Positions 2,670-47,255 of a stretch of 64,000 bases of DNA are shown piece after piece (the first letter of the stretch is position 1; each line of letters starts with the position of its first letter). Below the pieces are notes generated by a model. It had not been told where the DNA came from, did no database searches, and saw nothing but the letters and a program-made list of their open reading frames with translations. Source of the stretch: Takakia lepidozioides (lineage: Eukaryota > Plantae > Bryophyta); the NCBI GenBank assembly GCA_030704615.1, contig CM060734.1:52080001-52144000 (forward strand), read 5' to 3'. The translations under genes and the position numbers were made by a program.

Positions 2670-3179
2670 ATAATATTTCTAAAAATAAATATATTATTAA
2701 TAACGAAAAAAAGTGAACGACGTGTTCAACCAACGATAAACTCAGGAGCTGGAAACGACCGTGTGCATCCAACGATCCACCGTCCACCGATACACTCGAG
2801 GTGGACGCATCCGACGGTTTGTAAACGATGATGATCACTCCTTCCAAAACAATGTTGTTTATAAATACCCTGACTATCCTCGAAACGACGTCATAAGAAA
2901 CAACGGCGTCGTCGTCCGAGGTGCTCTATGGACAGCGCATAGAATTAGTTCATGGAATTAGTGCACATATTTGCAATTGTCGAGTTGTCACACGTTCATA
3001 CTACGCAACGACAGTGAGGATAGCACATTGACGTCGAATGTCACCGGGCACACCACCATCGCGATCAAAAAACGCAAAAGCATGGCCACATACTGGAACA
3101 TTAACCCTTAAACGCCCGCGAGGCCGAAACTGGGCCTCGAAAGATTTTTCAGGCGCAGGAACGTCAGACGGCGAATCCC

Positions 3180-6100
3180 GTGGACTCCAGCGACTCCGAT
3201 TTTCAGAGACCAGTGCCACGCAACCAACGGTCAGAGCCTCCACGCAAACTTCGGACAGTGACACCGAAGAGAACAAAAGTACAACGGCACAACACACCGG
3301 CATGCCCCAACGAATCCGACGTCTCGGATCAGTTTCAAAATCCGCTGCCACGCGATGCTTCGTTGACATTTGCACTTGGCTTTCCAACACCGCCACACAA
3401 ACAACGATCAGCGCATTCACGCCAACGTCGGACAGAAACACCGAATTCAACGACACTAAAACGACACTGTACACGGAGATGTCCCACCGAATCCGACGAT
3501 GCGGATCGGTTTCCAAATTTGCCACCAAACGATGCTTCATTGACGTCAGCGGATTGCAGCAAATTATCAAGACAGAAGTTATTGGGAAAGAAACGACAAA
3601 AAATTGAAGACAGTCCCAATATGTCCAATCTGACGGAAGTCGGCATTCCACGGGCCAGCAGGAAACGTCCAGCTGAGTCCGAAACTGGTGAGACCGATTT
3701 CTCTAGGAATCGGTGCTCCGCGAACTGGCCATCAACGACGGTCTGCCACCAAAGGCCATCAGAATTGCATACATCTGAGATGGCGGTTCCTCCATCCGGC
3801 GAGCGCAACACCACATCCAACGGCCTAGCAGGTCCTCAGCCGGCCGCGCCATCGACGGCTTCGGGCTAGAGGAAACAATAACGCGCCGTCAAAAGGGAGG
3901 CCTTTGACTACACGTCGGTGAAGGTTAGCTTTGGCAAAAGCTTCTGCCTGAGGGACGCCATGAGAAAAGTCGTGGAGGAGACCATCAAGGAATTGACGCC
4001 GCTGGCTGTGGAAGCATCCCTGTTTACGTCGTACCATATCATCATATGTCTTACATAGGGACGGCCCTCCCCGACGGATTGCAACGCAAGTCGACGTTTT
4101 TCAACCGGGCAGTGTGCGCCGTCCTGAACGACAGGAGGCTCCCCCAAAAAAAGGGCCCCGAAATCATCACATCATACGTTCAGTTCAAGCTGCTCCGACC
4201 GACATGATACACGAAACCGATGCGCAAGCCTCACTGGACTCACCTCACCGGCATGCTAGCCGATGAGATGTACGACAACTTCAGGACCTCCCGCGCCATC
4301 AATTTGATTCCTCGCCTCAGGAAATGGGCAAGAATGATGGTGTCAAAATCCGCTGATTCATTCCACGCTGAAAACGTCAGAGCCGCCGTCTCCTTGGTGA
4401 TTATGGCCACACTTGCCCACGAGCACGGATCCGCAGAGGCGCGTGCAAGGCGCGGTACACCATGCTCCGAGACATGGATGCCGGACAGATTGAGAGTTTG
4501 GTCACCATATGCCACCTCATCAGAACCAACCTTCTTCCTGGAGAACTGTTGCCGCTCGACCTAAAGAAGTAGGACTACCTCGCAACAACATGGAAAATCC
4601 TACCTCAGTGCATACCACGAGGATGTTGCCAACGCCGACAGGCTGCATCCGAGACGACGACCGACGTGTGCGAGGAAGCTTAAAGGGCTCCAGCTCTTCT
4701 CACTCCTACCACAAAAGCGCGTCAGGCCAGTCCAGTTAGCCATCACCAACACCATCCTGCGGTCGATCGCGACAAAGGCAACACCAATAGTGCAGAATCA
4801 TCCCGGTCTAGAAAGCATGAGCGACGACGAACAGTGGAGATAGTAAGTTTGCCCCCGAATCCCGCTTGTTTTCTTTCGCGGGGAAGGGGAGAGGATGAGG
4901 GGTACTAGAGGATGAAGTAGCGGTCAGCACGTGGCTGCCGCACGTGCGGAATGACGGGAGGTCACTTGTGCTCCCCTCGTCGTCGTGTCCATTGATGACA
5001 TATGGCCCTTCGTGTTGATTTTGTTTTACTAATTGTGGATTGTGTTGGGATGAAACAGCTTTTTCAAAATCGACCGGAAGTTTGAACGACCCGGAAGAGG
5101 ACTCAAGTTTCAAAATTTTATAACCACTGACGGGGTTGCGGTCAGTGTGCTATCAGGCTCGGCCCGACGCCAACCTGCAGTTACAGCCAGAGTAAGACAA
5201 CTGCTTCATTCACCATGTTTGCTTTTTATTGCCTTTAGTATCGAGTGTACCGGCTCGTGACGCACATGCGGGTGAACTTGTTGGACGACCATCATCGTCT
5301 TATTATGTGCAACGTCAATGGCCATGTGCGGGAAGGCGATATCTTCACCCTCGTTGAATCCGAAAGCGAGACTCGTCGCTTTAGATGAGTTATTCTGTGA
5401 TGTTTCCATGAATCAAAATCGATTTTAGTTGAAGTTAAAACATGGCAACATGATCTGTTGGGGATGTCTACAGCAGAATGGTTTATGACCGTATATACCC
5501 CCTGCAAATATGTGTGGTCGAGTGCCTCCAAGCGCCACAACCTTGTTTTGGTGAAAAACCCCATTTAAGGCGTTGGATATCCGAGAGATTCTCTTTGTGT
5601 TCGGGAAATGTATTGAAGTAAAAGCTTAATATTGTTTCTGAGGTAGTTTGATTGGAGGTGGACAGGCTTGTTGACGCGTCAGTTGAGGGAAAAACCATCT
5701 TATAGATTGACGTTTTCTTAAACGGACGTTGGTCTTGTTTTTTCGCAGGTGAAAGGACGCAAGAAAAAAGAGATGCCCAAACCGACTCCACACACCCATG
5801 TGCCATTGCCTAACCGCGTCGTGGCCATTGACCCGGGCCGAAAGTACCTCTACACGGGAGTGGTGTACTCGCCCAAAGCAAAACTACGGGTGACCTGCAC
5901 AACATTTGGTGTAGTCAAACAGATGTCACTCATTGGATGAGATTTGAGTGTCTACACGGCAATATGGAGGCAGCAGTCTATACCGGAAATCTCTCCACAA
6001 GTGTCTCCCATCTTTTGCTACACGGCTTTCCTGGCGAAGACTAGCCATCGGCAGCAAGATTGCCTTGGTAAATTGCACGATGACATCCTGGAGTACTTAA

Positions 6101-6475
6101 ATGTGGGTTACAGTGCAGCTGGATCAACCACTAATTTTTCACCAAATTTGTGCTGAAGCAATGCAATTGCTGGAAAACAAAGACCTGTGCATCATTACTT
6201 CAGTGATTTATAATTCTTGGACCCAAGAAATATGGACAGAATCTAGTAAATGATCTTTTCTTGCCCAAATCCAATCACCTTTAGAGAGGGGTTGGAGTGC
6301 CCACCGAGACGTCAACGCGGCGGTCAACATCATGCACCGGTTCTGGGAAATGCGAGACTCCCGGCCTCGCCACCCGGCATTCTGCAGGGCGGAGGCAAAG
6401 CCTCTCCGCGATGATGCACAACGGTGGGTTTTGATACTCACGTTGTATTGGTTACAAGATGAAGAGACAAGATGA
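3180..6475 (+). pseudogene. Fanzor1-like (TnpB/Cas12-related) RNA-guided nuclease pseudogene with at least two spliceosomal introns
   Basis: Motifs in Fanzor order: TSVKVSFGKSF...VEETIKELTPLAVEASLFTSYHII (about 3910-4045); LADEMYDNF...INLIPRLRKWAR (4220-4335); LFSLLPQK...LAITNTILRSI (4694-4770); WRY/FFKI...FQNFITTDGVAVSVL (TDG 5126-5134); RuvC-I VVAIDPGRK (D at 5830-5832); RuvC-III HRDVNAAVNI...RPRHPAFCR (D at 6308-6310). Introns 4843-5058 and 5192-5748 (GTAAG..CAG) join the frames exactly. Stops at 3867, 3879 and 4056 plus frameshifts; RuvC-II and Zn finger not found. Start codon uncertain. Confidence 0.88.
6395..6445 (+). ncRNA. Candidate 3' part of a Fanzor omegaRNA scaffold / element right end
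   Basis: Starts immediately after the RP..FCR C-terminal motif. Ends in hairpin CAAC-G-GUGGGU-uuugau-ACUCAC-GUUG. 46/51 identical to 36813-36763 (minus strand), with divergent sequence after GTTG in both copies. Confidence 0.5.
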
Positions 6476-6778
6476 AAGGGGACTAATTAAGGTTGAACCT
6501 GGCCAGCTGATCTAGTACTCATCGTAAAGATGCATGGACTGTAATTTTGTCCAGGCAAAGCTTGCATGAGCTTCAGGTAAATTTTCATTTTTGCTAGACT
6601 ACTGATGTGCGAGATTATAACAAGCTGGATATGTCAATGTCTACATTCACTTGAGCATGTACAGATTAAAAAGCCTTTGTTTGTGACATACAGTGAAGTT
6701 GGAAGTAAACACTACAAGGGTCTTTCACCGAGAGCTTGAAATGGCCCGGTGCTCAATGCAGCAAAAGGAGCGGATAGA

Positions 6779-9565: not shown

Positions 9566-12500
9566 TCAGAAGTAAATTTGCCGGCATTGAGAAGTCGTAC
9601 TCTCAGATGGGCAATAAGGGCACTTGAATCTCCGAGAGTTGCCCTTGGCAAGCTTAAGGATTGATTGCTTGCACAATACATGGCCACAAGGCATCAGCAT
9701 GGGAGGATTCTCTGCAGTGCTCTGGTCACGTGATACGGGACACGCAAATATGGAATGAAACTGGTACGCTTTGTCTACTTCAATTTCAACTGGTAACTGC
9801 TTCATAGTTTGCCATTCCTGCCACCATCAGCCAAAAAATTACTTGCATCAGCTTCGTCACCTAATACCCTCCAGCCAAACCTCACATTCAGCTGCCTTAA
9901 GCTTGTCTTCAAAAGAGCCAAGAATAAGTGTGCAATCACAAAGCTAGTTGTGAAGGTGAGAACAGCAGACTCAGAATACACAAAATGTGCATGGGAGTCA
10001 GAGTCAGAGCGCACAAAATAGCCAGAGAGGAGACAGAAGAAAAGGTTTATGACATACCGAGAGAGAGAGAATGTACTCATAAGATGTTGTTTTCCATAGC
10101 CTTGTGGCCATAGACCGCACCCAGTTTGGGTGGAACAAAAGGGAACTTATAATACCTTCGTGAGGGGCTCACTCAGGTAGTGTGACTTACCTTGATAGAG
10201 ACAATTAGTTCAGGTTTTCCAGATATCCTTTAGAAAGCCCTTCACACACGCATCAACTTGCGGTGTGTGAGCTGCCCAGCAATTAGACCCCAACAGGCCC
10301 AGGGATATAGGCTCAGCCTCCAGTTGGTGAACCGAGAGCATAAAACGTTGTTGCCATGCCCTTGTGGTCATAGACCCCGCGCCCAGCTTGGACAGAAACA
10401 TAGGTAATAGACACTACCTTTGTGAGGGGTTCGCTACAGTAGTGTGACTTACCTTGATATAAACAATTAGTTCGGGCTTCTCCAGATATCCTCTAGGACA
10501 CCCTTTACACAAGCATCAATTTGCTGTGTGTGAGCACCCAAAGTTAGACCACGACAGGGCCAGGGCTTTAGGCTCAGCGTCGAGATGAAAGTAGGTGAAC
10601 AGAGGTGCAGGAACTGAGAACTCAACAAGATTCACTTCCAAGGAAAAACATATTCTCTGACCTGCTTCTTGTTTGCCATCACTGTGGCCAGTTTTGTCAA
10701 TGTTGGGAGAGCTTGCAGTCCAGCTGAAACTGTTACATGTAGTGGGCTTTCATAGGCCTGGCCTAGAAGGTCGCAACACTCCCTTGTGAACTCAAGGGCA
10801 ACTGCGTCCCAGTGCGAGGGTGCAAGCAAATCTGAGTAAGGGGAAGCCTCCAGGTGGCTTGCCCAGAGGAGGCAACCCATCAGCCTTTGTATCTCTGCCA
10901 AGTACTGAACTGCAAACGGACCGAAGTAACTCCTTGCATACTGGAGTGCCGCTACGCTTCCCGCCTTGTTTAGCACATGCACAAACTGTAGCTGGTGCAG
11001 TTGGAACTCTAGCGCTGATCCCTGTTCACTTAACACGTCGCTAATTTAAAGTTTGCTTTAATGCACAGAAGCATCATGTTAAGTGTATCAGGCATTTATA
11101 CCACAGGGTTCTGTGAAAGACCTGAAAAGACAAGGGGCATCGGAGGCAAAAAGGCAAGCTTCTAGGATCATCAATCTAAGATACTAAGATACCCCAAGAT
11201 ACCATAAAATCCAAGAGGGCTTCCTCCCCTGCCAAGTTTGAAGTTCTTTCAATCATCCATGCTTCCCATTTCTTGCAATAAAAACAAGTGGGGAGCAACT
11301 AAGACTCGAAACAATGCCTCTACCCTGATAATGTCAATATGGCTTTGACATCCAACCCATCAAAATCTATTACAGCAAGGGAGCTACATATACCTTAAGC
11401 TCCAATTGATACAACAGCTGCTCAAGGTCAATGGACAAATAAGGTGTTGATGGCCAACAAACCCATGCATGCACAACGAAACTTGAAACTCAGAGGAAAG
11501 ACAAATGAAAGTACACCTTCGTTTGCAATGCAAGTCGGTTTTGCCTTGCCCAATCAAGAGCTGATTGCAAGTTCTTGGAGCGTAATTGCTCCAAAATCTG
11601 GTACATTTCATAAAAAGGAGTCTTAAGTTTTGCCCCATTGGATTCGTCAGTTTCCTTCACGAAGCAGTCACCAAGATCAAATAGGCCTTGCCGGTAGAAA
11701 TGCAGAGCAATAATTTGGTTGAGCAGATGACCATCAAATACAATCTCTCTGTATGCTTTCGCTATATCTGTAGAGAAGGCTTTGTCCAACATTTTTCCAT
11801 ACTTAATTGCTGCTAGGTTCACCTCCTTCTGAGATACACTGACCTGCGATAAAGAGGCTCAAATTAAAAATCCTGTGAGACTGTCACATGAAGCACATTT
11901 TCGCTGTCTCTGCTTTGTCCTGTTCGTATTGCACCATACATGTTCACATTTGCTCTCACCTAGTGGGCACTTCAATCTTCTAGCTAGTAGCAGTATATGA
12001 GTATCAGTGCAAGTGGCAAACAGTCGGACTATGGTTCTCACCTTCTGCGAGGAAAATACTCAATCCACTTTTGCAAGCTCCTCATCACACAGAACTGCAT
12101 ACGGACAATTTCTGCGCTAAATGGAACTGCATACTAGAAATGTTGTTGGACTGCAGTAGGACACTTAAGAGTAATAGCCTATAGGAGTAACGACAGCTCT
12201 TTGCTGCAGTCCTATTTGGATTACCCATTTGTATAAGATATGCATGGCTTACAACGAGGATAAGATAGTTTCTAGAACAGGGGACATCGGCACTAGAGAA
12301 ATGCAAGAACAACCACACATCGCATCGCATAGCATAATACAGAAGCATTGCTCAACCGTACTTCCGAACCATTCTCAGGGAGTGTCACCCTTGGTGCATA
12401 ATTAGGGACTCTTGACCGTAGTCAGCATGGTAAAAGATTGGACACCAACTTCACTACCCACTCGCACTACAGCAATTCGTTCGCAAAATTTCACCTGATT

Positions 12501-12710
12501 CAATGCGCCAATCTCCGTCAATTGTCCCTGCAAGCCCGTCAACGAATTGTTCTGACTCGCCATGGACCACTCTGAATGCTCAAGAATCTGCTTTGCAACT
12601 AACTCAATTTCATGAAGCAGTTTGTCAATGACATCTTGAGTCTTCGAGTAGGAGAGTTTCTGCTTTTTAGATACTCGATCAAATGCATCCCGAATAGAAG
12701 TTAAATCCAT
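9566..12710 (-). CDS. RMD5: RMD5/GID2 (RMND5) homologue, CTLH/GID E3 ligase RING subunit, copy A
   Basis: Exons 12710-12495, 11843-11517, 11021-10662, 9817-9566 give 384 aa plus stop. LisH (LNQIIALHFYRQGLFDLGDCF), CTLH/CRA and degenerate RING (FHSIFACPVSRDQ...MLMPCGHVLC...FKCPYCP). All introns GT-AG, phase 0. Confidence 0.95.
10065..10620 (-). mobile_element. Two tandem 3' fragments of the non-LTR (RTEX/CR1-like) element, in RMD5-A intron 3
   Basis: Reverse complement matches the family 3' end (...ctatggccacaaggctatggaaaacaacatcttatgagtacattctctctc) and the LEAEP...DACVKGFL.DIWKT coding tail, twice. Confidence 0.8.
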
Positions 12711-13007
12711 AGCTCCTTTCTCCCAAACTACTTTCAACCCTATATCCCTATGAGCCTCTTATCCAAGAAACCCACGAACTCGATGCATCACCAGCGCCTC
12801 TTTGCTCATCCAAGAAACCCACAAGCTAGGGCACGGTGCCAATCCCTCCTTGCTTTGGGGTTGTAGTGTCTATTTTCGTCCCTGGGCTATATCAAGCACT
12901 GCCCTTTGTAAATGACTTCCTTTCTCCGTCGCTGGATTAGGTCTGGATTACGTAGCATTACGGCCTCCGCTCGGGGCATTTTCGTAATCTGCGCAGGGGC
13001 CTATATG

Positions 13008-14894: not shown

Positions 14895-17710
14895 TCATTC
14901 TACCTCAAAGAGGTTTGTCTCTGCAATCAAGTCCTCATTCTCATCTAAGAGGACTTCTTCCCTATCCAAAAACTCTTTCATGGAAGTACTAAAGCAACCA
15001 ACTCTAGCATCATTTGGCCAATTCTTGACTACACTCACAATCATATCAAGGTTTTCAATATTTAACCTGCACCGTCTGACACCTGCAATACTAAAAACCC
15101 TCTCGGCTTCAATCTGAGATCCAACTATGCCCAAGATTAGCCATGCCAAAAATCCCACATACGGAAAGAGAGACTCGTGTTCTTTCCACCATTTCAAAGG
15201 AGCCACACACTCACCTTCAATTATCTTCGTCCTTCTGAAATGTGATAGTTGTTCTCTCACTACTGTCAATGTCATGTCTTCATTGTGGTCATGCACACCA
15301 AATAAGGACATCTCGTCCATTGTGGAAGTGGGCTGTGATTGGGCCGGAGTATCCGGATGTAAGACCTTGAAACATTTTACTAAAAGAGGCTCTAACACCA
15401 TGCTATCATATTGGGACACAATATGCAAAGCACGCTCTTTGCCCACATATTGTGATACCAATGACAACCCCTTGTAACGTGGGTCAAGCATAAGCGCGAG
15501 CATATTGTGAGCTTTGCGCGATTGAAACCCTTCAAAAAAAATAAAAAATGGTTCCAAGACATATACCACCTCTCGAATCATCCGCCATTCCAACAATGTC
15601 AACTCTGTTGAGAAATCCCTCATGCAATGATCCACAGTTGCAGCCCTGGGAGCACTACATCCTCGCATGCGAATTGTTGTGCAATGGCTGCATTAAGAGC
15701 ATCGGACAACAGCCAAAATCCCCCAGATTGATTCATAATGCACTCATGAACCACAGGCCCTAGAACTATAGAAATTGATTGGGCAATGGTCCACACTTGT
15801 GGACTTGGTATGCGAGACTGCAGTGCCAATGAGGTTTGCCTAGAGTAACAAGTGATTATGGCTTGCCTAAACTCCAAAGTCTCTTGGAAGATGATCACCT
15901 TGGAAGCAAACCGTGTCTTCACCGGAGTCTTCAATTTGGGGGATGAATGTCGCTGTCCACACATGCCTTTGCCCATTCTTGTCTCCCTTTGTCATTTTTT
16001 TTTGTCCAAGTAATGGTTTTTTGCAACTCTGATTGGGCATTTTTTATAGAAACCGATCTCATATCTGTGCATACTTTTGCATCATTTGTTGCATACTGGC
16101 AACACTTGGACATTGCATGCCCAAAACAGCTACCCAAAATGGAGAATCCAACCCCAAACACGCACATGAGACCACCGAATTCAAAGCATTGGTCAAAGTG
16201 GCCAAGTTATCTCCCTCATCTTTGACGTAAGCAATAATGCGAGTATTGAGGCCATACTTCACAAGAAGATTCTTGACTTGATGTGCCATGGCAGCCCCAG
16301 GTGTGTCAGGTGTCTCAAACATGCCAAGAGTCACATGACATTGCTCCCATTGTTCATTAATAAAGTGCGCTATGATGACAAAAGTGTCAGTTCCCCCTCT
16401 TGACATCCACAAATCAAAACTCACAGAGCAAGTAGCACAATTCTGAAGAGATGGGGACATGTAGCGCTCTTTCGTCTTCTCTGCCAAGATTGGAATGGCC
16501 TCATTCACAAATGTCCGTCGACAAGGGAAAACAATCCGAGGATTTTGCCTCATCACCATCCATCTTAGCCAAGGGGATTCTATCAAAGACAGTGGAACCA
16601 ACTCCTTTGCAATGAACAAGACTAAATCCTCATTGAACTGCTTCTGTTGATCATCATTTTGGTTGTATTTCCCGAACTTCTCGTCGATGCTGTCTCGACG
16701 CTGCCCCCCTGTGCTTGGCCACCTTCTACCTGCGCCAATGAGTGAGGCGCCAGTGGCATAGAGCGGCAGGTCAGGTTACTATGGCCAGCACAAGTTTGTC
16801 GTTCTAAGACGTGGGGACAAACAATAAGCCTTTTGTAAATAATTGAAGAGGATGCATGCGTAGTAGTGATGCACAGGTATACTACTGTGTAGCTGCTCAG
16901 TTCGTATGTAGTCTCTCCCTTTGTGGGAGTCATGCTACCCTAAATAGCTACATACAAGAAGGCTTTACGCCATTAATAATTTGCAGAGGGTGCTGCACAT
17001 ACTGGTGTAGTCTGTAGCTCAGTTTGTATGCCCTCTCTCCGTCTGCGGAGTCCTGTAAATACCATTACACAATTACATACTCATGAATTGAGTTGTTCTT
17101 AAACTCCATGCTGTCTGTGCAGTGCAGTGCGCATAGTAAGGAAATGGTGCAGCAGTGTATGAGCTCAAAAGAAGCTATGTTTCTAGGAGTGGGGCCGGGC
17201 CTCTTTTTTGCTGGCCTACGGGCCTTCTCAGGTCCTTCATTTTCCCTCTCAATCCACCTACGCAAAACAATGTCATGTTCTTGATCCACATGCTTTCGAA
17301 GGGCAGATATACCATTGGTTTTGTTATAGGTCACAATGCCCTTCTTGCTTGCAAGAGTGACACCAACAGGATGACATAGAACACACCTCATAATTGTTGT
17401 GGATTTGTTATGTCCACTGAGCAGAGTCTTTTGTTGCATAGAATGCCAATGTCGAAGCAGTGCGATTGTGGGCTTCCAAAAATCCCGTTGTTTTTCAATT
17501 ACTGGAAGCTGCGCCTCCACATCCAACACCGTGTGTGATGGCGAAACTGTGGAAGATGACATTGCAGCCGAGGCTTGAAGAGCTGATGTAAATGAGGCTG
17601 CATGATGAGCATCCTCCGCAACATGGCTCCACCAAAGCTCTCTCATTATCAACATTGATGTCAGGAACAACTTCCATTTCTAGTTCATCGAAAATATTGG
17701 GCTCCATGAC
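14895..17710 (-). pseudogene. hAT transposase with frameshifts (BED finger, DDE core, hATC dimerisation domain)
   Basis: MRCVLCH...YNKTNGISALRKHVDQEH (BED); SVSFDLWMS; AYVKDEG; CFGHAMSKCCQ; TPVKTRFAS; LDPRYK; PLKWWK...GSQIEAERVFSIAG. Split over several ORFs, with about 480 bp of unrelated sequence near 16680-17160. Confidence 0.9.
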
Positions 17711-36566: not shown

Positions 36567-36762
36567 TTCCAACTTTGCGAGACGTTTCTCAATCTCTGAC
36601 CACCAGACTTCTCTCGCACTTGGAGCTGGTTGACCATGATCTAGATAAAGCCCGAGCTACATACTAGTGCACTTTTGTTTGCTACAAGAAAAAAATTCTT
36701 GCTAGAAGGGAAATAGATCGACCAGCTGCTCTACAGCACGTAATACTATATCGAGATCCTTG

Positions 36763-36813
36763 CAACGTGAGCATCAAAACCCACAATTGTGCATCATCGC
36801 GGAGAGGGTTTAC
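36763..36813 (-). ncRNA. Stand-alone copy of the Fanzor 3' (omegaRNA-like) segment, framed by a 12-bp direct repeat
   Basis: Reverse complement gtaaaccctctccgcgatgatgcacaattgtgggttttgatgctcacgttg versus 6395-6445 gcaaagcctctccgcgatgatgcacaacggtgggttttgatactcacgttg. AGATCCTTGCAA at 36754-36765 and 36814-36825. Confidence 0.5.
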
Positions 36814-37277
36814 AGATCCTTGCAAACTCCATCTAAATGAGTAACCACGCTCGCCGGAAGAGCTCGCCACCATCAAGGCATTCTCTTCCTCAAAGACAGG
36901 ATCAATCAACCAAGTCGCCATCTCGTCGCACCTTCCGGACATGTGCTTGTTCTCCATTTCTCCTCTTACAATACAAAGAAACCAATACAAAGAAACTGTA
37001 CAATCAAGTCCCAATTACAGGTCTCTGATCTGGCATCCTTTTTCTATGATGTTTTTAGCAGTTAAATTACCTTGATGGAGGTACATCACGGGTTGCAAAC
37101 TTTCTTCAGAAAGATATTTACAGAACGACCCGCATTAAGGTAATTCACTCTCTTTTTAGTGCACGTTATTTGCGGCAGCTTCGACTTTATTTATCCAATG
37201 ATGTTTGTACGACTAGAGAAGAGCTCGGATTAGGGTTCCCTTGGCAGCTCTCTTGCAGGCTTGAAGAATCCAGCGCG

Positions 37278-44649: not shown

Positions 44650-47255
44650 CACTTCCTGGTTTGGACTGAGATCAAAAGGTGTTTTCCCACCACCAAGAGA
44701 TCTGTGAAACATTCGATTCGGAAGTGGCGCATAGAAAAATTCCACAATGAGGAGGTCAAGGCTGAGTACGTCCAGGCCTTGCAAGAGGCTCTCCCTCATT
44801 TTGTCCAATCACTCCAAGAACTTCAGTCACGCTCTGTTAACGCAAGAAATGAAGTCGAAAGAGCAGTGGACTCTTGGGAGGGTTTCGTTTCCTCCATGGC
44901 TGACAAGATCATTGGGAGGAAACTAATTGTCTGCGGTAGAGCAGGTAATTGGTGGACTAATGAGATTAAACTCAAGATAGCTGAGAGACGAGCCCTCTAT
45001 AAAGAGTGCTGCAATTTGGAAACCAACAGAGAATTGTGGGCGAGGTACTACCAGCTCCGTAAAGATATCAATCAGCTTGTTAGGTCTCAGAAGAAATTAT
45101 ACTGGGACAAGTTATACAGTGAAATAAACTCAAACCACCATGGTGGTAATGACAAGAAATTCTGGTTGGCCCTTCAACGTTTGTACAAGCCGAAAAACGG
45201 TCAGCAAGTACAAGCGCTGAAGACTACTAAAGGTGCAGTGGTGACTTCATCGGTTGACATTGTCAAAACCTTTGAAACTCACTACAGTATCCTTGGCAGA
45301 ACTTCTAGGTCTAACAGTGAGGGGTCTTCTGCTGAATGGAGGGACACAGTTGGAAAAACTGTTCCTATGATTCAAAACAGCCCTGATGAACTGGAGTATA
45401 TTTCAATGGCTTATAATGCTCCCATTAGTTCTTCTGAGATTGTGGAAGCAATTGAACATTTAAATGGATATAAAGCTGGTGGACCTGATGGTATTGTCAA
45501 TGAGCTTATCAAGCACGGTGGCGATCCCATGATAGAGGCCCTAGTTCTCCTCTTTAACCTTATCTGGAAGACTGAAATGATCCCCTTTCGCTGGCGACAG
45601 GGGGTCATTGTCAATCTATACAAGAAGGGTGACAGAGAAGAACCGGGGAACTACTGTGGCATCACGCTCCTCAATGCTGTTGGCAAGACATTCTGCAGAG
45701 TTATAAGTACTCGTCTCGAGGTTGATCTGGAGTCTAGAGGTTGTTTCCACGAAGGCCAAGCTGGCTTTCGGCGAAACAGGGGCTGTGTGGATCATATCTT
45801 CACTCTAAGCCAGATTATCCAGGGAAGGAAAAAAGAAGGGAAACCCACTTATGTCTTTTTCCTGGATGTCAAAAAGGCTTATGACACAGTGTGGAGAGAT
45901 GGCCTATGGTTCCGCCTCTGGTCTTGTGGGATCAAGGGAAAGATGTGGAGAGTTGTCCACAGCTTGTATGCTCACACCAAAAGCTGTGTCACTGTTAACG
46001 GACAGAAGTCCAACTTGTCAAAGACCAAGGTGTAGCTCAAGGATGTACTCTCTCCCCTCTGCTCTTCAATGTTTTCATCAATCAACTCCTTGAGGATGTG
46101 GAAAGTGAGGGATTTGGGTTAAGGGTGGGTGATACCACCATACCAGCCCTTATGTTTGCGGATGACTTCGCAGGCATAGGGGAGACTCCAACCAATCTCC
46201 AGGAGTTGATTGATTGCGCGAAGAGGTACTTTGATCTTTGGGGGCTAGAGGCTAATGTCAGCAAATGTGCAGTGGTAGCATTCAACGACAGAGGAGAGGG
46301 AGGAAGTGATCTTAAGTGGCAGTGGGGTAGCCAAGAGATCCCGGTCCTCCCTTCCTACACTTACCTGGGCGTTGAGTTCTCCTCCAATTGTAATTGGGAT
46401 GCACATATCCGGAAAGTTGTTCAAACTGGCAAGGGCAAAGCTCTGGGGCTCACAAGCTTTCTGCAACAATTGGTATGAAGTTTGGGACATCCATGACAAG
46501 CCTAAAGGCGGAACAAGACCGTCCAACAAACAAAGAAACAGCCCACATTTCTTCAGAACAGCTAATGTGGGTTTGGGGCAAGTTTGGGATACCTCCTTAA
46601 GCTCTCAATGTGATGAATTCAAGGTCAGATGGTGGGGTCAGTTGAATTGCTTGCTGCATACCAGATACCCTAAGATAATCAACGCTATTTCTTGGAAGCA
46701 AGACCGTTCTGTTAAACAGGCTTAAGTCTTGGTATCTGAATGTTAGTCCAGAAGAAATAACACCACTGGATGAAGCTGACCTGGAGGGGGTTGTGTCCAA
46801 AGTCATGTCTGATGCCCAAAGACTGTCTGATGAAAATGAACCTACCTAAACTTGTTTCCGGTCTGTGACATGGGCGAGGACCTTACTGATGATCTGAAGG
46901 GCCTACCTACCCTTGGCACTAGACTAAAATTTAAGCTCAGTTTGAGCAATAAACAGATGCAGAGAGGGAAGAGGAGATTGTAATTCCTGATGTGTGGGCA
47001 GCCTGAAGGCAACATCCATTTTCTGTACGTTATCTGGGATATTCTCACCAGAGTGACCCTCTTCAGGACGATCAAGAACACAGTCCCTGTACCTCTGTTC
47101 ACCTTTCAAAATCTTGAGGCTGAGCCTAAAAGCCCTGGCCCTATTGGGGTCTAACTGCTGGGCAGCTCACACGCAGCAAGGTGATGCTTAAGTGAAGGGC
47201 TTTATAGAGGATATCTGGAAAACCCAAATTAATTGTCTTTATCAAGATAAGTCAT
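44650..47255 (+). mobile_element. 5'-truncated non-LTR retrotransposon (RTEX/CR1-like ORF2: end of APE endonuclease, RT, decayed C-terminus)
   Basis: Begins at HFLVW (end of APE). KAGGPDGIVNE, YKKGDREEPGNYCGITLL, QAGFRRNRGCVDH, FLDVKKAYDTVWR; after a frameshift near 46020, GVAQGCTLSPLLFNVFIN, LMFADD, YTYLGV. Clade label is inferred. Confidence 0.9.

Follow-up and report, generated by a model that had tools for sequence, protein, structure and literature searches.

A block of broken reading frames in a 64-kb stretch of the Takakia lepidozioides assembly (contig CM060734.1, positions 52,080,001 to 52,144,000; hereafter the window) raises the question of whether a Fanzor1 gene once stood there, and whether such a gene belongs to the genome in which it lies. 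Fanzor1 proteins are eukaryotic relatives of the bacterial TnpB/Cas12 RNA-guided nucleases. A first-pass annotation had proposed a dead Fanzor1-like gene on the basis of short, ordered motifs. According to our analysis, the segment from about 3100, or from further left, to 6445 is very probably a single decayed copy of a Fanzor1 element that resides, in several copies, in a plant-like nuclear genome. Coordinates refer to positions within the window throughout.

Identity of the coding remnants

Region 3000–6700 was translated in the three forward frames. All the motif strings previously reported were recovered on the + strand, and their coordinates were checked as follows:

3918–4040, + strand: VKVSF..VEETIKELTPLAVEASL..YH, frame 0
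near 4690, + strand: FSLLP, frame 2, in a nearly open stretch
near 5120, + strand: ITTDGVAVSV, frame 2
5818–5841, + strand: VVAIDPGR, frame 1, with the RuvC-I Asp codon GAC at 5830–5832
6302–6331, + strand: HRDVNAAVNI, frame 2, with the RuvC-III Asp codon GAC at 6308–6310
6362–6388, + strand: RP..FCR, frame 2

The gene occurs once within the window. Its RuvC-I aspartate was aligned with the invariant D382 of a Fanzor1 alignment, A1, and the RuvC-III aspartate is likewise kept. Public reads labelled with the same organism as the window contain further copies of the gene, in which RDVNAAVNI is preceded by W-N. For this reason, WNRD.NAA.NI was chosen as the pattern with which collections were scanned for DNA encoding relatives that could serve as a bridge to the solved structures. 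The scan of giant-virus bins returned full-length open reading frames (ORFs), including L055:2135–4015, which was the seed of A1 and matched the solved proteins PpFz1, SpuFz1 and GtFz1 with E-values of 9e-49, 6e-47 and 2e-13, respectively. L055 has 982 relatives; all 120 of those listed carry PF26935, and most of them PF07282 too. The metagenome scan yielded L067, with an intact ORF of 730 residues, and L072, an intron-bearing gene, which matched profile A1 with 99.4–99.5% probability and E-values of 3e-22 and 1e-21. An AlphaFold model of L067 (pLDDT 66.7) matched the structures of SpuFz, PpFz and GtFz at 2.6e-17 to 9e-13, compared with 1e-4 or worse for Cas12f, TnpB and Fanzor2 (2e-3 for TnpB and 1e-2 for Fanzor2). 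In addition, an identical Fanzor1 last-exon peptide, ..CRNTECRRILWNRDVNAAVNILHLF.., was found on seven JAABU* metagenome contigs (L059, L061–L063, L065, L068 and L070), which represent an unannotated multi-copy, intron-bearing Fanzor1 family of another eukaryote.

Homology searches with the window gene were made exon piece by exon piece. In hhalign comparisons with the Fanzor1 alignment A5 (44 sequences), exon B matched columns 341–373 (probability 88–89%, with E-values from 2.5e-6 against A5 to 3.1e-6), the RuvC-I exon matched columns 413–428, which cover the invariant aspartate (E-value 5.6e-4), and the C-terminal piece matched columns 635–663 (probability 74%, E-value 2.8e-5). The order of these three matches is that of the gene, and A1 gives similar ones. 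A Fanzor1 hidden Markov model (HMM) built from 124 sequences and applied to the 2742 six-frame pieces of the window ranked 5054–5257 first and 6254–6472 second. When the whole window was searched by tblastn, the N-terminal ORF of L072 gave colinear matches at 3834–4091 and 4100–4420 (sum E-value 4e-10), and its C-terminal ORF matched at 6302–6391 with 58% identity over 31 residues, including ..RPEAFCRS versus RHPAFCRA. L067 was matched in order at FSLLP, TDG, DPGRK.LYT and the C-terminus, and the RuvC-I exon is 67% identical to it over 15 residues. Of the 30 best clusters for the ESM-atlas features of the RuvC-I exon, 19 carry PF26935 (score 0.97); the atlas features of the FSLLP piece were uninformative. 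The RuvC-I and RuvC-III pieces found no match in the PDB by phmmer, a related-locus search with the C-terminal piece was blank, and so was a homologous-protein search with the 118-residue and 72-residue pieces, the length window of which leaves out full-length relatives.

Scans of single pieces against Pfam, NCBIfam and PHROG gave sub-threshold matches only, all from the last piece, which aligned weakly with the final positions of the TnpB models PF07282 (E-value 0.014), NF040570 (0.028) and phrog_506 (0.016). Such matches would also suit descent from a prokaryotic TnpB (IS200/IS605 or IS607) or from a Fanzor2, an origin that we regard as extremely improbable. The 49 phage TnpB loci with RDVNAAVNI that were retrieved by a pattern scan of viral contigs share only that nine-residue motif, whereas the TDG strand, the IDPG form of RuvC-I, W-N-RD and RP..F.R are features of the Fanzor1 profile. 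The TnpB of ISDra2 (8H1J) has the C-terminal RuvC-III RD.NAA.NI and the RNA-guided nuclease fold class in common with the window gene, but it is much shorter, lacks the N-terminal extension, the introns and the TDG, IDPG and WNRD forms, and is the structure that reached only 2e-3 against the L067 model. The fold of L067 favours Fanzor1 over Cas12f by more than eight orders of magnitude, and by even more over TnpB and Fanzor2.

The Fanzor1 layout claimed at the outset is thus borne out by a chain that leads from the window pieces to L072 and L067, from these to profile A1, and through L055 to the solved PpFz1 and SpuFz1. The profile and structure comparison that had been suggested as a check gave exon-wise hhalign matches to Fanzor1 and, for the relative L067, a predicted fold matching Fanzor1 structures. 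Chance occurrence of the motif strings is set aside because a structure-anchored Fanzor1 profile aligns with three exon pieces in the order of the gene. These results support the earlier identification of the gene as a Fanzor1.

Predicted exon structure and decay of the window copy

The block was resolved into the following features, with the basis of each assignment in parentheses:

3100–3779, + strand: upstream A/C-rich part of the repeated element (read coverage, composition)
3780 (or 3621)–4842, + strand: exon A, WED/REC, with VKVSF..VEETIKELTPLAVEASL and FSLLP (L072 tblastn, alignment A2)
4843–5058, + strand: predicted intron 1, GTAAGT..CAG, phase 2 (split codon TA/C, Tyr)
5059–5191, + strand: exon B, WED strands, FFKIDRKFERPGRGLKFQNFITTDGVAVSVL (top Fanzor1 HMM match among six-frame pieces)
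5192–5748, + strand: predicted intron 2, GTAAGA..TTGTTTTTTCGCAG (polypyrimidine tract-CAG), phase 0 (frame 2 joined to frame 1 without a shift)
5749–5951, + strand: exon C, shortened, with RuvC-I in RVVAIDPGRKYLYTGV (hhalign; in-frame TGA at 5938)
5952–6302, no strand assigned: block of host-like DNA (composition; no Fanzor similarity)
6303–6394, + strand: remnant of the last exon, with RuvC-III (H)RDVNAAVNI and RP..FCR (L072 match, hhalign)
6395–6445, + strand: 3' terminal segment of the element (read contigs diverge beyond 6445)

The upstream part, 3100–3779, is probably a 5' untranslated region or promoter, or else a disordered N-terminal extension, and contains a 177-bp tandem duplication (3215–3367 and 3392–3544, 75% identical). 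The gene start at 3180 given by the first-pass annotation did not hold, as only a GTG-initiated ORF begins there, in an A/C-rich stretch with several frames open on both strands. The openness of 3100–3779 in several frames results from its T-poor base composition, and a 254-codon open frame at 3105–3866 was rejected as proof of coding on the same grounds. Conserved coding starts near 3834, with candidate ATG codons at 3621 and 3780.

Exon A is read in frame 0 to about 4079 and then in frame 2, the change being a −1 frameshift (a one-base deletion placed by the L072 alignment). The two intervening segments downstream of it are GT–AG and phase-consistent, and would be removed by splicing as judged from the sequence. 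Joining exons A and B in this way would give ..EQW-R-Y-FFK, spaced as the conserved W-x-x-F-F-K (WSRFFK in L055), of which W305 is nearly invariant and F308 invariant in A1. With intron 2 removed, the distance from TDG to DPG is 48 residues, versus 52 in L055, by hand count on the translations. The codon CAA at 5111–5113 was considered as a mutated splice acceptor and rejected, since it is a synonymous Gln codon within exon B. Two of the three frame changes are therefore explained by introns and the third by the shift near 4079, in line with the proposal that introns and a frameshift hide the gene from an ORF track. At least four exons made up the original gene: the three visible ones and the last, of which a remnant persists.

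In reads of other copies, exon C runs on as AAAGTATTCAG and then a GTGAGT donor. The window copy leaves the sequence of these copies at 5951, and agreement resumes at 6303. The intervening 351 bp show no Fanzor similarity in any frame, and their observed-to-expected CpG ratio (CpG o/e) of 0.36 and GC content of 0.44 compare with 1.01 and 0.51 for the element. The same block forms a contig of its own, of exactly 351 nt, at about twice the single-copy depth and with other flanks elsewhere. A second, permuted arrangement was also observed in the organism's reads, in which the block is followed by GTCCAT, 5880..5951, AAAGTATTCAG and GTGAGT. Downstream, the GAG at 6392–6394 aligns with the stop codon of L072, which is not kept here.

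Neither the RuvC-II glutamate (DEFRTS region) nor a zinc-finger TNB domain (CxxC..CxxC) before RuvC-III was found in the window copy, the former having been sought in every frame of 5860–6310; this loss had gone unnoticed in the first-pass annotation. Both are present in L072, and the glutamate also in L067. Judged from these two relatives, about 170 residues have been lost, comprising the GD motif, the RuvC-II glutamate and the zinc finger. They are missing because the 351-bp block stands between RuvC-I and RuvC-III, and the RuvC-II loss is a lesion of the window copy. The family itself probably has a zinc finger, as the reads of other copies show ..C-Y-R-T-T-W-N just upstream of RDVNAAVNI, on the 6303 side.

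Six in-frame stops were identified (TAG 3867, TAA 3879, TAG 4056, TGA 4205, TAA 4562 and TGA 5938). Together with the −1 frameshift and the loss of the RuvC-II glutamate and the zinc finger, they establish the copy as dead, as had been asserted. A functional Fanzor1 gene that looks broken merely through its introns has next to no likelihood: two real-looking introns do account for two of the three frame changes, but the stops lie within homologue-aligned segments, the shift at about 4079 persists, no frame of 5860–6310 contains RuvC-II or the zinc finger, and other copies differ exactly at stop positions 3867 and 4205. This explanation is effectively refuted.

At these two positions the window copy has T, whereas other copies have C at 3867 (with A at 3869) and G at 4205; at least some copies thus lack both stops. 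The first-pass annotation had attributed the early stops to C-to-T decay of CAG/CAA codons. This is shown for one stop only, that at 3867; at 4205, T stands against G. The general pattern of change is in keeping with it. Among the 38 differences listed for run X1, 30 are transitions, 14 of them at CpG sites. The window copy carries TpG or CpA against CpG in the others in 11 of these 14 cases, and the reverse holds in three, a bias that fits methyl-cytosine deamination and is seen despite the element not being CpG-depleted overall.

Probable residence of the family and its possible origins

Parts of the element are held by runs from four studies labelled with this organism. Four DNA runs, all of one sample, hold 78–84% of the sampled words of 3000–6600. 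In run X1, 159 contigs fall on the stretch, of which 71 are at least 99% identical to it, 38 at 95–99% and 50 at 90–95%, and the summed depth is about 100, versus about 25–29 for the unique flank. Contig identities and excess depth together indicate several diverged copies. In an independent run of 2017 from another study (X5), record 12 spans 6394–6600 with zero differences, and the 3' junction of the element with host DNA is therefore real. Runs X5 and X6, only guessed to be RNA, contain unspliced sequence that has no bearing on expression.

The surroundings support a plant nuclear context, as previously supposed. An RMD5/GID2-like gene with CTLH/CRA and RING-Ubox domains lies at 9569–12758 on the − strand, is multi-exon and, as far as its exons were seen, appears intact; a plant U-box ARM gene is found at 27–29 kb. 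Two transposon-related features were also noted, namely remnants of a hAT transposase at 14895–17670 on the − strand (with a Dimer_Tnp_hAT match in ORF 14895–15668 and more ORFs upstream), and a retroelement at 44704–46035 on the + strand, with a 443-residue ORF carrying an RVT_1 reverse transcriptase domain.

Eight read contigs diverge from the family sequence after 6445, which places the 3' end of the element there. Reads of the family cover 3100–3779 and run to the left of 3000, where the 5' boundary lies. Just upstream, a (TA)27 microsatellite occupies 2612–2665. Within 3100–3153, a stretch of 32–54 nt with the hairpin GAGGCC-gaaactg-GGCCTC recurs inside unrelated contigs, including one of 3451 nt (depth 85) in run X5, and also in a plant metagenome run; it has no Rfam match. 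The terminal segment 6397–6445 recurs on the − strand at 36763–36811, over 49 bp with 92% identity, and the comparison of the element's 3' end was made from these two sequence copies only. On either side of the solo copy, which is 48 bp long and lies in the region 36740–36830, stand the same 12 bp, TTGCAAGGATCT; it may have arisen as a very small insertion with duplication of its target, or as a repair footprint.

The element stands out in composition, with a CpG o/e of 1.01 (3100–6445) compared with 0.55 for the window, 0.43 for the neighbouring gene and 0.43–0.60 for the surrounding host DNA, and a GC content of 0.51 compared with 0.45 for the window. This compositional island suggests a foreign or fairly young family, because the element is not CpG-depleted while the host DNA around it is. 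The same figures, and the provenance of the nearest relatives from metagenomes and giant-virus bins, could point to contaminating fungal, algal or viral DNA, or to a chimeric join in the assembly. We consider this very unlikely, given that the element recurs across studies and as several diverged copies in the same organism's reads, that its introns are spliceosomal in type, that host-like filler sits within the gene, and that an isolated copy of the element's end is found 30 kb away within the window. A chimeric join had been named as a possible undoing of the annotation; the reads show no join artefact, the 3' junction being crossed into unique flank by the contig of the independent run.

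Entry of the family on an endogenised giant virus (NCLDV), rather than as a passenger of a cellular transposon, appears improbable but deserves more weight than contamination. Giant-virus bins often contain Fanzor1 genes that share the WNRD.NAA.NI signature, and the composition of the element is not host-like. Against this, no other viral gene was recognised beside the element, the window gene has introns, as does its closest relative, L072, and scans of viral contigs for close relatives of L067 and L072 were blank, which is weak evidence.

A Fanzor1 gene is expected to be carried in a eukaryotic transposon (Mariner, hAT, Helitron, MuDR or others) with recognisable ends, and the end of the omegaRNA scaffold is expected at the 3' end of the element, with the guide beyond it. 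Several results weigh against our reading of the block. No terminal inverted repeat, target-site duplication or transposase belonging to the element was found around it, and there was no sign of an omegaRNA, the 3' region folding no more stably than shuffled sequences (z-score −1.06) and having no Rfam match. As for the protein, no single window piece reached curated Pfam or NCBIfam cut-offs, the 118-residue REC piece had no match among 1.84 billion representative proteins, and the N-terminal pieces were not significant against the broad Fanzor1 profile and match L072 only.

A decayed copy of a multi-copy, resident element nevertheless remains our preferred explanation. The presence of copies at 90–99% identity in the organism's reads, with introns spliceosomal in type, bears out the suggestion that this plant lineage has or had a Fanzor family. 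It is conceivable, albeit doubtful, that a bryophyte lineage harbours a fairly young Fanzor1 family, maybe still active, with plant-type introns and a composition unlike that of the host. This reading draws on the other copies that are free of some of the stops and on the lack of CpG depletion in the element.

Comparison with known systems and significance

In the solved Fanzor1s SpuFz1 (8GKH), PpFz1 (9CF0) and GtFz1 (9CER), the motifs follow the same order as in the window gene, namely an N-terminal strand and helix, the TDG strand, RuvC-I with IDPG, WNRD.NAA.NI, and RP..(L/F).R. The window copy differs from them in lacking RuvC-II and the zinc finger, in its many stops, in a very divergent REC region that matches only L072, and in being placed, with introns, in a plant-like genome. 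The closest of the sequences found is L072, an unannotated Fanzor1 with an intron on the JGI metagenome contig Ga0207674_10052092. In WED/REC, it is only about 25–30% identical to the window gene. Its intron lies near the window's intron position yet differs from it, the region 3' of its stop is not conserved with the window, and its RuvC-II and zinc finger are intact, unlike those of the window copy.

Among streptophytes, a Fanzor1 of Klebsormidium nitens (KnFNuc) was chosen by Jiang et al. for activity testing, with five copies reported, and eukaryotic Fanzors have been found to gain introns at host-like density (PMC10530073). KnFNuc resembles the window family as a multi-copy Fanzor1 in a streptophyte, a likeness drawn from its published description; its host is an alga, whereas that of the window is bryophyte-like. 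The 'plants' among which Saito et al. list Fanzor1 comprise Chlorophyta and Streptophyta (PMC10432273). In published surveys, such 'plants' are represented mainly by green algae and a single streptophyte alga (PMC10432273, PMC10530073). Full-text literature searches for land plants, moss, bryophytes and Viridiplantae retrieved no description of a Fanzor in embryophytes, and bryophyte genera were not found in the supplement of Saito et al. Fanzor1 is thus already known in a streptophyte alga, and no description of a land-plant family was found in the literature.

In our proposed account, the ancestral element would have encoded, in this order, WED, REC, WED, RuvC-I, RuvC-II, the zinc-finger TNB and RuvC-III. 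If they behave as the characterised Fanzor1 and TnpB proteins do, intact members would bind RNA that is transcribed at the element's 3' end and would then cut guide-matching DNA beside the element end, thereby helping the carrier transposon to persist. The window copy is incapable of this. Besides the stops and the frameshift, it has lost the RuvC-II glutamate and the zinc finger to an internal deletion, which 351 bp of host-like DNA have filled, and it is a pseudogene relic.

The Fanzor1 nucleases are genome-editing enzymes that can be programmed and that originate in eukaryotes. Their known host range would become wider with an intron-bearing family resident in several copies in a moss-like genome, and such a family would suggest that copies adapted to plant nuclei already exist. 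The window copy itself is only a fossil; it serves to mark the family and to illustrate decay through stops, CpG transitions and a deletion with filler DNA. Any higher interest hinges on whether other loci of the genome carry intact copies: one that is naturally intact and has its 3' RNA, if it exists, would be a native land-plant RNA-guided nuclease, possibly a recent horizontal arrival.

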